DNA of 63,965 bases, the filler included, from Octopus bimaculoides (lineage: Eukaryota): NCBI RefSeq assembly GCF_001194135.2. It is 7 parts of 7 records of this genome, joined end to end, with 100 filler letters (N's around TTAATTAATTAA, not from the genome) between each part and the next. Parts side by side here need not be neighbours in the genome. Positions count along the whole stretch, not along the records: positions 48,366 to 56,400 come from NW_026390950.1; 6 more parts are not named here. The stretch is one strand, 5' to 3'. Below, one piece after another: positions 48,366 through 55,328 of the stretch. A program made the position numbers and the translations under genes. Positions within the stretch are counted from its first letter, which is position 1. Each line of letters opens with the position of its first letter. The notes under the pieces were generated by a model. The model worked only from the letters and a program-made list of their open reading frames with translations. It was not told the origin of the DNA and did not search any database.

Positions 48366-48428
48366 GATACTCAAATAATACAAGTTCATGGACTGCCTTA
48401 TGTTGGCAAAACAAGTCTTGTGAAAAAA
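48366..48428 (+). CDS. NB-ARC/STAND-TPR gene, Walker A exon (5' end lost in gap)
   Basis: DTQIIQVHGLPYVGKTSLVKK contains the GxxxxGKT P-loop. It ends at a GTAAGA donor in phase 0 and joins in frame to 49706. Too short for the ORF track. Confidence 0.88.
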
Positions 48429-48929
48429 GTAAGAAATTTAATATTGTTTTTTCTCTTTTTTTTATATTCTTACCTTTACCTTAATGTATTCTGCCTTTCA
48501 ATAAGTTATTAGAGATCCTCAAGATTTTACAGTTAAGTTACTGACTAAAGAGAAAAGCATTTCTGGTTCAATCCCATACAATGGCAGTCACTGAAGTATT
48601 TGTACCATTTGTTGAGTTGATGGTTGACCTATGATTTCTCCGATTACTCTCCTGCCTATTTAAAAGTGTCAAAGACTACATTATTTAATGTATCCTGCAC
48701 TATGTTATGAAGAAGAGGTGCAGTTTGAGAGAGATTTGACTGCTTTTTCTAGCAGATTGGCTTGACAGTGCAGGCAGGCTCTTGTCTTGCTACAGGGCAG
48801 CCCTGATTGAGACTTATAGTGAAAGGTATTCTATCTGTGCCTATAGACGTATAATCATATACTGTTGGTAGATAATAGTGGAGGCGCAATGGCCCAGTGG
48901 TTAGGTTTGCAGTCTTGCATACTGCATGG

Positions 48930-49295
48930 CAATGCCACCAGTGCTTGTGCCATCTGGTATATGCTGTGAAGTGGTCGGCATTAGGAAGGGCACCCAGTTG
49001 TTTAAACCATGCTAAAGCAGACACTCGAGTGTAATGTAGTCCTTGGACCCATCAGATGCTGTCAAACCCCTCCAACCCATGCCAGCATAGAACATCAGCA
49101 TCATTTAACATCTGTTTTTCATGCTGGCATGGGTTGGTTGGTTTGACCAGGGGCCTCACCAGGTTCCGTTGTCTGTTCTGGCTTGAATTCTAGAGCTCAT
49201 TGCCCTTCCTAATGCTAACCACTCCACAGAGTGTAGTAGGTGCTTTTAATGTGGCACCAGCATAAGTGGGCGTTAAATGATGATGTTGATGATGA
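48930..49295. mobile_element. Tail-to-tail pair of family D elements in an intron of the NB-ARC gene
   Basis: CCAACCCATGCCAGCAT (about 49073-49089) is complementary to ATGCTGGCATGGGTTGG (about 49121-49137); GGCATTAGGAAGGGCA is complementary to TGCCCTTCCTAATGC. Confidence 0.8.
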
Positions 49296-49705
49296 TGAGT
49301 TAAATAGTCAGAGAGATAAATGAAGTTATTGATGGGTAGAAGAATAAATGTAGAGACTAGTTAATTGATAGACAGGGAGTCAGAGAGGTAGATGAAATAA
49401 GAGATGGATAGTAAAAGAGATGAAGCAACTGTGTAATTAATAGAAAGATAGTTAAAGAGACAGAGTGGCAAACTGACAAACTGCTATCTAGAAAGATACT
49501 TAGACAAACTGTTAGATGAATATAAAGGAAGTCACTTAGATACACTGAACTAATGCATAGATAAAAGAATAGATAAAGAGACAGTTATTGATAGAGAATT
49601 ATATAGTCAGACGGAGAAAGAAACAAACTGAGAGACCAATAAATTGATAAGTGAATCTATCAAAATCTTTGAACTTGTTCTAATGTTATGTTTCTAATAT
49701 GACAG

Positions 49706-50731
49706 GTCTGTGAAGAATTGAAGGATGAAATTAACCCTGAAAGACTCCACATAAAACACATCCATATTTCTAATAATAGCAGTTGGTCTGATATTTCCAA
49801 CATGTACAATACATTCACCAATTGTTCCAGTATCAGCAATACTAAATGGAAAATTTGTATTTTTGATGATTTCCAGAACATTCAAGAAAGCTTTCTTCCA
49901 GATTTCCAGGAACTTTGTGACAATGACTTTCCAATGCACATAAATCTAAAAATCATTCTCATATTAAGTGGTGGAAAACCATTTCAGTTTGATGGAATCA
50001 ATTTTGGAGAGTGTAAAGTGAGTCCATTGTCCATTAAAGAAGCACAACTTCTTTTCGGTCGCTGTTCAGACATTGAGATGAATAATGAAAACAAAGAGCA
50101 AATACACAACATCATCAGATATGCCTGTGGCCTGCCAGGACTTCTAATTTACTATGCAGAAAAAATCTCTCAATTTCATCATCATTTCTCTTTTGATGAT
50201 ATCTACAAAATGATTTGTGATGAAACTAGCATCAATGATTGGCTGGATGAATGTACAATTAACAGACGTAATATTAAACAAGAAATGGACAAGTATTTTT
50301 CTCAACTCTCTCACAAACAGCAAGAAGCTCTCAAATTGCTTTCATATTTTCCTGGAAGATTTGGTATCGAGGAAGCTGTTGAAATGACTGATTCTTCTAG
50401 TCAACCAGCTTCCAAGATGCATGTTCTGATGCCGCTTGTTGAACAAGGTTTGATCAATTCAGATTTAGAATTACAGACTTTTCAAGTGCAACAGTTAATA
50501 CGTGTACTTTCTATGCAACAGATAGACAATGTACACAGCAATGATTTGGTAAAGCTCAAATATACAAACATTATTGGGAAAAGTTTGATGAAGGCTCAAA
50601 ATATTTATGATAGAGGTCTCATATACGAAGCACTTGGAATAATGAGAAATAACTGGGAAAATATTTCATTTCTGATGAAGAAAGGGATTGATGCCCCTTC
50701 AGATGGTAGGACATATGGAGTTTATTATGAG
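49706..50731 (+). CDS. NB-ARC/STAND-TPR gene, main exon (342 codons; NB-ARC core, winged helix, helical linker)
   Basis: Acceptor TTTCTAATATGACAG, donor GAG|GTAAGT, phase 0/0, no stops. Walker B ICIFDDFQN; sensor-1 strand LKIILIL; RNBS-C-like VSPLSIKEAQLLF; GLPL-like ACGLPGLL; YFSQLSHKQQEALKLLSYFPGRF; LVEQGLI; MHD-position FQVQQLIR. Confidence 0.93.
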
Positions 50732-53739: not shown

Positions 53740-54201
53740 AACATTCAACTTTGGGTCTTTGATTTCCAGACAGACAAGGTGGATATGGTAACCTTTAGGA
53801 GGGACAAACAAGAGTGCCTAATAATTGATGTGGCAATGTCAGGAGATCAACATATTATTATGAAAGGTAAAAACGTCAATAAATATGGAGACCTGAGAAT
53901 TGAGATCACCAAGATGTGGCAGCTATGAGAGTCAAACATAAAAGTTGTCCATATTGTCATTGGAGCATTGGGTTCACTACCACCCAACCCGAAGAAACAT
54001 TGGGACACTTTACAAATACCTTACAATCTATGTGTATTGCAAAAGTTGGCTTTACTTGGAACTGCACACATATTGTGTAAAGTACTGTCTGTCTGAGGTC
54101 CTTGTTGTGACTTGACAGACAATACAAACCCTTACTTGACACATTATCTGCAATCCATATCACAATATTTGACACTGTGCAATGTCTTCAATAATAATAA
54201 A
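53740..54201 (+). mobile_element. 3' end of an RLE-type LINE (R4/Dong- or Hero-like), intronic
   Basis: LWVFDFQTDKVDMVTFRRDKQECLIIDVAMSGDQH...KYGDLRIEITKMWQL*ESNIKVVHIVIGALGSLP...LQKLALLGTAHILCKVLSV* is a clear RLE domain with one internal stop (53926) and a deletion before the PD aspartate. The 3' UTR ends in (AAT)n. Confidence 0.88.
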
Positions 54202-54474
54202 TTATAGGATGATCCCTGGCTTACCATCCATACAGGAAGTGCAAGGACTGTCTTATCTGGTACGACACACATATTGAAAACAACATCGTTGCTGTGAATT
54301 TTCTTTCCTTTTTTTCCCTTTATATTCTTTGTTTTCTTTTGTAATTTTTTTCTTCTTTTCTTATTCTCTCTGTCTTCTTTCTTCCTTTTTTTTTTCTCTC
54401 TCTATCACATGACTTTGTAAATGAACAACCTGCTGTCTTTATTTTAATGGCCTACCAATGAATACAATGAGTTT

Positions 54475-55166
54475 CTTTGCCCTAAAATTTTGGGTGATGG
54501 AACTAGTCGATTACATCGACCCCCAGTGCTTGGCTGGTACTTATTTTACTGACCACCAAAAGGGTTAGAGTTAGGGTTAGGTAAAGGTAAAGTCAATCTC
54601 TGCAGAATTTGAACTCAGAATGTAAAGATGGATGAAAAGCTGCTAAGCATTCCATCCAGCATGCTAACAATTCTGCCAGCTTGCTGCCTTAATGATAATA
54701 ACAATAATAATAATAATAATAATAATAATAATAATAATAATAATAACAATAATAATAATAATAATAATAATAATAATAATAATAACAATAATAATAATAA
54801 TAATAATAATAATAATAATAATAATAATAATAATAATAAAAAAAATAATAATAATAATAATAAAAAAAATAATAATAATAATAATAATAATAATAATAAT
54901 AATAATAATAACAATAATAATAATAATAATAATAATAATAATAATAATAATAAAAAAAATAATAATAATAATCCTTTCTACTATAGGCACAAGGCCTGAA
55001 ATTTTGGGGAAGAGGTTAAGTCGATTAGGTTACATCCTGTACACAACTGGTACTTAATTTATTGACCACGAAAGGATAAAAGGCACAGTCAACCTCGACA
55101 GAATTTGAACTCAGAAGGTAGCGACGGGTGAAATACCACTGAGCATTTTTCCCAGCTCGCTGCCTT
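54475..55166 (-). mobile_element. Two head-to-tail family A SINEs (54475-54690 and 54972-55166) separated by a long (AAT)n tract
   Basis: Both heads (AAGGCAGC(A/G)AGCTGG) lie on the minus strand; (AAT)n at 54691-54971. Confidence 0.85.
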
Positions 55167-55218
55167 AAATGATGATGATGATAATAATAATAATAATAAT
55201 AATAATAATAATAATCAG

Positions 55219-55328
55219 TTTTGCAGAAGCCGGTTACACCATGACTGCTGATGATGCCAACCCACAGATGGTGCTGAATGCGAGGATCACATGTGCCTCT
55301 ACCATGGCCTACAACCTCTTGTTTGTCG
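55219..55328 (+). CDS. NB-ARC/STAND-TPR gene, probable next TPR exon
   Basis: Phase 2 entry gives EAL(N)FAEAGYTMTADDANPQMVLNARITCASTMAYNLLFV(G). STMAYNLLFVG echoes NSMAYNAYMRG 44 aa upstream. The acceptor lacks a pyrimidine tract and the donor GTAATA is weak. Confidence 0.6.

Follow-up and report, generated by a model that had tools for sequence, protein, structure and literature searches.

A partial octopus gene that very probably belongs to a clustered octopod family of NB-ARC–TPR proteins

What kind of protein is encoded at positions 48366-55328 of a 63,965-nucleotide stretch of Octopus bimaculoides DNA (the window, which joins seven parts of the genome assembly, filler included)? The initial annotation read this piece as an intact gene for an NB-ARC (STAND) protein with tetratricopeptide repeats (TPRs), and as a candidate NLR-like sensor. 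We consider it very probable that the gene belongs to a small, clustered octopod family of NB-ARC–TPR proteins, from the AP-ATPase clade of STAND proteins, whose products would act as nucleotide-dependent switches. It adds a divergent new member to the known NB-ARC–TPR proteins, and public annotation already lists it as an uncharacterised protein.

Positions 48366-56400 are base-for-base identical to the entire unplaced scaffold LGKD02096082.1 (8,035 bp) of O. bimaculoides assembly GCA_001194135.2. The gene was at first thought to lack a name, but public annotation already covers it as RefSeq "uncharacterized protein LOC106880901". Nor is it intact here: the scaffold cuts it at both ends and holds its middle 59%, exons 1 (partial) to 5, which encode residues 40-541 of a protein of ~856 residues in the numbering of the Octopus sinensis orthologue (LOC115223561; P0001, 856 residues). 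The fragment protein is 93% identical to this orthologue. The first 39 codons, contiguous with exon 1 in O. sinensis, are cut by the scaffold start, and exons 6-9 (~315 residues, with nearly all significant TPRs) lie past the scaffold end; exon 6 is ~1.7 kb downstream of exon 5 in O. sinensis, and 1.07 kb remains here.

Within these limits the predicted gene structure held. Five exons with GT/AG borders and compatible phases splice into 501 stop-free codons, as the initial annotation had proposed (five phase-compatible exons, about 500 residues). The exons, and an assembly gap between two of them, are as follows.

48366..48428, + strand: the 3′ part of exon 1, which has 21 codons here (DTQIIQVHGLPYVGKTSLVKK), phase 0, cut by the scaffold start
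49706..50731, + strand: exon 2; 1026 nt, 342 codons
50818..51718, no strand: assembly gap (N) inside intron 2, between the exon-2 donor (50732) and the exon-3 acceptor (52165)
52166..52322, + strand: exon 3; 157 nt, a helical hairpin that opens the repeat region
53368..53515, + strand: exon 4; 148 nt, a TPR-like hairpin
55219..55328, + strand: exon 5; 110 nt, with a weak, conserved acceptor; coding continues past the scaffold

A tblastn search with the orthologue placed its residues 40-61, 57-405, 402-455, 455-506 and 504-541 collinear with the five exons, and all splice sites are kept in O. sinensis, where exon 1 has 117 further coding bases upstream, ATG included. An older public record (P0098, 503 residues) equals the five-exon splice plus two read-through codons. 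Exon 2 encodes the remaining nucleotide-binding domain (NBD), helical domain 1 (HD1), the winged-helix domain (WHD) and a helical linker domain. The exon-5 acceptor looks weak (aataatcag/TTTTGCAG; aataattag/TTTTGCAG in O. sinensis); an alternative, stronger-looking acceptor at 55227 was rejected because in-frame stops follow it. The orthologue reads ...GVYYE/IAFKASD... across the junction of exons 2 and 3 with no residue absent, and therefore the gap is intronic, hides no coding sequence and leaves the frame continuous. Its written length is likely an underestimate, the true gap probably being longer than the run of N, because intron 2 measures ~4.2 kb in O. sinensis against 1.4 kb here (901 N included). 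A second, short N gap (55783-55815) lies in a (GGT)n tract in the intron 3′ of exon 5; the exons are untouched by it.

The current RefSeq protein XP_014786550.2 (P0097, 475 residues) starts at an internal Met and runs past the exon-5 donor into the intron (…LLFVGNNCIMSLVVVV…; positions 55329-55411), which we regard as a read-through artefact because the scaffold is truncated. In O. sinensis, one paralogue has an isoform (P0071) with the end …EALKYVVQVR, a read-through of the exon-4 donor, and this frame (EALKYVVQVILISS…) is also open in the window at 53516-53530. The donor read-throughs at both places are annotation artefacts, and perhaps isoforms.

Is the nucleotide-binding module of the NB-ARC type? 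Profile and structure methods were needed because the fragment protein falls below the Pfam NB-ARC gathering cut-off (PF00931, 23.5 bits). Word-indexed database searches of the family returned no relatives outside octopods, and the gain from a wide-profile search of the same type was limited to a few bacterial NB-ARC proteins. We ran an octopod profile of the nucleotide-binding and oligomerisation domain (NOD) against 1.84 billion proteins in a search that used no word index; only 37 proteins matched at E ≤ 1e-3. Named matches come from Argonauta, the bivalves Solemya, Potamilus, Pecten, Saccostrea and Ruditapes, the gastropods Haliotis, Lottia and Batillaria, a sea urchin and a hemichordate, and some of the alignments are independent of the P-loop (for example P0026, E=2e-13, query 79-453). 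Pfam NB-ARC was matched at E ≤ 0.001 in 14 of 36 scanned proteins; half of the ten scanned in detail exceed the 23.5-bit cut-off (26.1-37.2 bits), so that the profile connects the family with NB-ARC proteins of molluscs and echinoderms, and the best octopod family member reached E=5.4e-5. Against solved structures, a joint NOD profile matched plant NLRs at 1e-14 (range to 1e-8), the archaeal STAND-TPR protein PH0952 at 9e-13, AfsR at 2e-12 and Apaf-1 at 7e-6 (residues 125-445), in alignments that begin at the P-loop, cross the winged helix and reach the MHD helix (NBD-HD1-WHD). The joint profile also retrieves bacterial NB-ARC proteins.

Structure prediction points the same way. A first AlphaFold2 run on a shallow octopod alignment was poor over residues 160-403 (predicted local distance difference test, pLDDT, below 50), and its Foldseek list held mostly TPR proteins. 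With a deeper alignment that included NB-ARC relatives, the paralogue P0008, which is 90% identical to exon 2 of the window, was modelled at a pLDDT of 88.9 and a predicted template modelling score (pTM) of 0.86, with a five-stranded NBD, a four-helix HD1 and a winged helix bearing a β-hairpin. The top Foldseek matches in the PDB were CED-4 (TMq 0.55, root mean square deviation 4.8, 374 columns) and the active Apaf-1 apoptosome, the CED-4 and Apaf-1 matches to NBD-HD1-WHD having TMq values of 0.53-0.57; the plant NLRs WRR4A, NRC3, ZAR1 and Sr35 were also at the top, and PH0952 was present too. For the whole-protein model, the match at rank 2 was the STAND-TPR protein 6mfv, the only PDB chain to align over the whole model. 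The check by AlphaFold and Foldseek that had been suggested for this gene places the paralogue model closest to CED-4, Apaf-1 and plant NLRs. Three independent routes, namely transitive profile homology, the joint profile against PDB structures and the predicted fold of the paralogue, point to the NB-ARC/STAND assignment first proposed for the locus.

The motifs of the module, placed by alignment and modelling, are the following.

48390..48416, + strand: Walker A/P-loop GLPYVGKTS, which fits the GxxGxGK[ST] column of relatives
49850..49873, + strand: Walker B strand KICIFDDF (hhhhDD), strand β3, from the alignment
49946..49975, + strand: strand β4 LKIILILSGG, the RNBS-B/sensor-I position, from the alignment and the model
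50012..50056, + strand: RNBS-C-like motif CKVSPLSIKEAQLLF of the form hxLxPLsxxEAxxLh (hxLxPLsxxEAxxLF), from the alignment with relatives
50126..50146, + strand: GLPL motif CGLPGLL in HD1, from the alignment
50330..50377, + strand: winged-helix motif LSYFPGRFGIEEA / LKLLSYFPGRFGIEEA, RNBS-D-like, from the alignment and the fold model
50480..50509, + strand: MHD-position motif FQVQQLIRVL, from the alignment

In the paralogue model, residues 108-114 (Walker B) form a predicted strand, and the Pro of CGLPGLL is the sole invariant column in a family-wide alignment of 29 sequences. The MHD position aligns with vvHrLLR of a plant NLR, and the winged-helix fold is predicted at high confidence. Of the motifs that the initial annotation had named, the P-loop, Walker B, RNBS-C-like, GLP and winged-helix motifs were located, but 'MHD' stands as a position only, its His replaced by Gln.

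Several observations weigh against this assignment. In the fragment protein no Pfam family rises above its cut-off: NB-ARC scores 14.6 bits over residues 1-61, the P-loop only, and the other sub-threshold matches at the level of the P-loop are to AAA_22, AAA_14, NPHP3_N and others. A PDB sequence search with the fragment protein gave no match, and the octopod-only profile retrieved from the PDB only kinesin-light-chain and other TPR chains. The NB-ARC call rests on transitive homology and on the model of a 90%-identical paralogue. Sensor I carries Ser (ILILSGG) in place of the Arg of the TTR/TSR of relatives, and at the MHD position Gln replaces the His of relatives and plant NLRs. In the alignment, the sensor-I Arg is also absent from the cephalopod-like sequences nearest the octopod family and from many mollusc relatives; the Gln is common to the fragment protein (FQVQQLIR) and the octopod sequences of alignment A6, and relatives are variable at both positions. 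By Pfam, the full-length orthologue P0001 has no effector domain (CARD, Death, TIR, coiled-coil (CC) or other). Finally, the gene sits on an unplaced 8-kb scaffold that the chromosome-level assembly does not incorporate, and could be a redundant or incomplete copy.

Such a copy would be a haplotig or a dead, partial version of a gene in the cluster, with no independent functional gene on the scaffold. Truncation at both ends fits this explanation, as does the artefactual RefSeq model with its internal Met start and exon-5 donor read-through, yet all 501 codons are open and all splice sites are conserved. The ratio of non-synonymous to synonymous substitution rates (dN/dS) against the O. sinensis orthologue is 0.19 overall at dS 0.17, and the flanking introns are 85-92% identical between the two species. 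Because of this ratio we conclude that the reading frame is under purifying selection, as had been supposed from the absence of stops in the 342-codon exon. The proposed comparison of NB-ARC and TPR exons gave dN/dS values of 0.24 (exons 1-2) and 0.08 (exons 3-5). Additionally, exons 3-5 are 90-95% identical to the orthologue P0001 versus 56-75% to P0007, the one full-length-type O. bimaculoides paralogue that was mapped. Since these exons are nearer the orthologue than this paralogue, the scaffold represents a distinct locus, orthologous to LOC115223561. On balance we find a haplotig or dead copy improbable.

What does the rest of the protein look like? TPRs were expected to follow the NB-ARC module, and in the full-length orthologue they do: TPR_12 reaches 44.8 bits (cut-off 30.1) at residues 651-714, the significant repeats occupy residues ~524-730, off the scaffold, and the profile matches the kinesin light chain TPR at 4e-13, likewise beyond the scaffold. 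The repeats inside the window are weaker than had been described; exons 3-5 are predicted to form helical hairpins, and their TPR matches (TPR_10, E=0.033, in exon 4; TPR_2, E=0.15) are not significant by themselves. The N-terminus of P0001, off the window, has ~22 low-confidence, disordered residues and then FVGR...NBD, and the tail after the TPRs is ~110 residues long, helical and without a family match. The family architecture is ~22 unstructured residues, an NB-ARC module (NBD-HD1-winged helix), a helical linker, TPRs of the TPR_12/kinesin light chain type and a helical tail of ~110 residues.

This architecture bears on two further explanations. An octopus orthologue of Apaf-1/CED-4, acting as an apoptosome scaffold, would explain why CED-4 and Apaf-1 are the best structural matches. 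However, WD40 repeats and a CARD are absent, only ~22 residues precede the NBD, TPRs stand in place of WD40, there are several paralogous copies, and the profile scores plant NLRs and AfsR above Apaf-1; APAF-1 is moreover reported as absent from molluscs in published surveys (PMC11463336). We judge such an orthologue very improbable indeed. A NACHT-type NLR of the animal clade could be suspected from sub-threshold Pfam NACHT matches in two relatives (E about 1e-3), but only NB-ARC among the NOD families passes its Pfam cut-off in relatives. NACHT proteins are found neither in the top 50 Foldseek matches nor among the best 60 PDB profile matches listed, and Pfam NACHT (PF05729) matched neither the fragment protein nor any protein among the octopod family matches listed. 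A NACHT identity is hardly credible, the least probable of the explanations that we weighed. The statement that the architecture differs both from Apaf-1 (WD40) and from NACHT-LRR receptors is borne out. On the evidence for these rivals and for family membership, the Apaf-1, NACHT and NPHP3-type readings were rejected.

Is the gene one of many? We found 18 proteins of this family in octopods, with members of ~850 residues, and paralogues cluster at CM016881.1 4.03-4.27 Mb in O. sinensis and at CM046623.1 23.85-24.16 Mb in O. bimaculoides. The suspicion of an uncharacterised cephalopod family was well placed: the family is small, clustered and octopod-specific, and the suggested count of paralogues gave several copies per genome, clustered in both species. 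The octopod records found are named only 'uncharacterized protein' or TPR-region, and their precomputed Pfam annotation lists TPR families, with ATPase_2 in one partial protein.

The two halves of these genes tell different histories, with concerted evolution of the NOD exon across the clustered paralogues and divergence of the TPR exons. In comparisons with L001, L002 and L003, exon 2 groups by species: the window and the O. bimaculoides paralogue LOC106874622 differ in it at a dS of 0.09, two O. sinensis paralogues at 0.095, and all pairs between species, the orthologous pair included, at 0.18-0.21. Megablast similarity to LOC106874622 stops ~20-40 bp beyond exon 2. Exons 3-5, by contrast, group by orthology, as their identities to P0001 and P0007 indicate. 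Between the Argonauta paralogues P0012 and P0014, identity is 100% for HD1-WHD but drops to 39.5% for the TPRs and 30% for the tail, and paralogue identity is 39-67% in TPR regions versus 90-100% in the NOD. Because exon 2 groups by species and exons 3-5 by orthology, it looks as if the NOD exon has been homogenised by gene conversion limited to that exon, while old, divergent sensor exons persist.

How does the family compare with described systems? Its nearest metazoan relatives, from molluscs, a sea urchin and a hemichordate (among them Potamilus streckersoni KAK3596952.1 'NB-ARC domain-containing protein', Saccostrea echinata XP_061176032.1 and Strongylocentrotus purpuratus LOC100889376), share a collinear NOD followed by TPR_10/TPR_12, with E values of 1e-13 to 1e-5 in the library of 1.84 billion proteins. 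The NOD pattern common to relatives is FVGR...GxxGxGKS, hhhhD[DN], PLsxxEA, GLPL, FPGxF and RFxIH/Q..LR. Identity to these relatives is 18-22% only, and the octopod clade differs in falling below the Pfam NB-ARC cut-off and in its Ser at sensor I and Gln at the MHD position. Metazoan NB-ARC–TPR 'NLR-like' proteins have been described in Placozoa and Hydra, where CARD or Death-like effector domains are reported (PMC6321704); the octopod family is without such domains. CED-4 and Apaf-1 share the NBD-HD1-WHD module and give the best structural match, but the octopod family has no CARD, carries TPRs and not WD40 repeats, and is multi-copy. Plant NLRs (ZAR1, Sr35, NRC, Roq1, WRR4A) have the highest profile scores and strong Foldseek matches, whereas the octopod sensor is a TPR and not an LRR array, a CC, TIR or RPW8 N-terminus is missing, and the MHD His is lost. 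Prokaryotic STAND-TPR proteins (PH0952 of Pyrococcus horikoshii, PDB 6mfv; Streptomyces AfsR; cyanobacterial NB-ARC–TPR) share the order of NOD then TPR; the octopod genes, in contrast, are spliced animal genes without the DNA-binding domain of AfsR/MalT-type regulators.

The introns between these exons are rich in repeats. Intron 1 holds a ~360-bp insertion relative to the orthologous intron of O. sinensis (48861-49222), which contains a long hairpin. It is probably a dispersed repeat, similar to a short interspersed element (SINE) or a miniature inverted-repeat transposable element (MITE), because many partial copies are scattered over the O. sinensis locus. In tRNA and Rfam scans of the piece, no tRNA was found, and the one microRNA-like hairpin (49057-49151, within this insertion) was sub-threshold (E=0.032, 28 versus 71 bits). 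A direct repeat of ~200 bp (51737-51945 and 53165-53346; 96-97% identical, spacing 1,409 nt) has one copy in intron 2, 5′ of exon 3, and another whose end lies just ~20 nt 5′ of the exon-4 acceptor; O. sinensis shares the latter copy. Intron 3 carries an imperfect (CAT/CAC)n tract of ~400 nt (52340-52745), which yields long meaningless open reading frames (ORFs) on both strands (His-rich, Ile/Thr-rich and Ser/Pro-rich), and ~3 units of a ~30-nt minisatellite (52872-52977; gaattgatgacggtgaactttccct…) that has grown to ~2.4 kb in the orthologous intron of O. sinensis (L001, about 16,800-19,280).

Intron 4 contains two ~75%-identical copies of a dispersed element (54499-54693 and 55010-55156) with many copies in the O. 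sinensis locus L001. The pair flanks a long (AAT)n microsatellite (about 54690-54970), which gives spurious poly-Asn, poly-Ile and poly-Leu ORFs. The same intron has, at 53767-54096 on the + strand, a frame of ~110 codons with one internal stop (…LIIDVAMSGDQHIIMKGKNVNKYGDLRIEITKMWQL*ESNIKVVHIVIGALGSLPP…LQKLALLGTAHILCKVLSV). This frame looks like the conserved C-terminal tail that invertebrate retroelement ORFs carry; a Pfam search with it gave no match.

What might such a protein do? The STAND and NB-ARC proteins Apaf-1, CED-4, plant NLRs and MalT/AfsR have established switch behaviour, and by analogy with them the octopod protein would act as a nucleotide-dependent switch. The TPR array may keep the NOD closed (autoinhibition) and bind a protein or peptide ligand, which may be microbial (as in immune sensing) or endogenous, and ligand binding may lead to nucleotide exchange and to oligomerisation through the NBD-HD1-WHD surfaces. 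Because an effector domain is absent, output would pass through recruited partners or the C-terminal tail. The Ser at sensor I and the Gln at the MHD position probably weaken hydrolysis and ADP-locking, and because of these substitutions the switch may be controlled mainly by the TPRs.

A genuine NB-ARC–TPR protein need not serve immunity. It could instead be an ATPase with a regulatory or scaffolding task, as are bacterial MalT/AfsR or animal P-loop–TPR proteins, NPHP3 among them, as may be suggested by the lack of a death-fold or TIR effector domain, the weak matches to NPHP3_N, AAA_16 and ATPase_2, the kinesin-light-chain type of the TPRs and the low dN/dS of the TPR exons against the orthologue. 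Lineage-restricted clusters with divergent repeats are, however, typical of sensor families, unlike one-to-one housekeeping genes, and this family is lineage-restricted, multi-copy and clustered, with TPRs far more divergent than the NOD. Additionally, the 22 of the 37 profile matches for which a taxon was identified include no vertebrate or arthropod. We regard a non-immune role as a possibility to be kept in mind, though on the doubtful side.

For the NB-ARC–TPR family as we favour it, a putative immune or cell-death role is plausible because the family is clustered and lineage-restricted, its sensor regions are divergent, and Apaf-1 is reported as absent in molluscs. As signs of pathogen sensing or cell death, the clustering and the TPR divergence between paralogues are only suggestive. 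A more specific proposal is that gene conversion keeps the single large exon for the oligomerising NOD almost the same between paralogues, beside old and highly divergent TPR and C-terminal exons, and that the clustered, effector-less array may form a modular set of intracellular sensors with a common signalling core, which would serve immune or danger sensing through an output partner; we consider this speculative and rather unlikely.

The family combines its traits in an unusual way: effector domains are lacking, the sensor-I and MHD residues are degenerate, and a homogenised NOD exon stands next to sensor exons that have diverged. Should it have no part in immunity, it would simply add to the lineage-specific STAND-TPR families. 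Little has been described of the intracellular sensors for immunity and cell death in cephalopods, and with its NB-ARC core recognised the family becomes a concrete candidate for NLR-like signalling in octopus.

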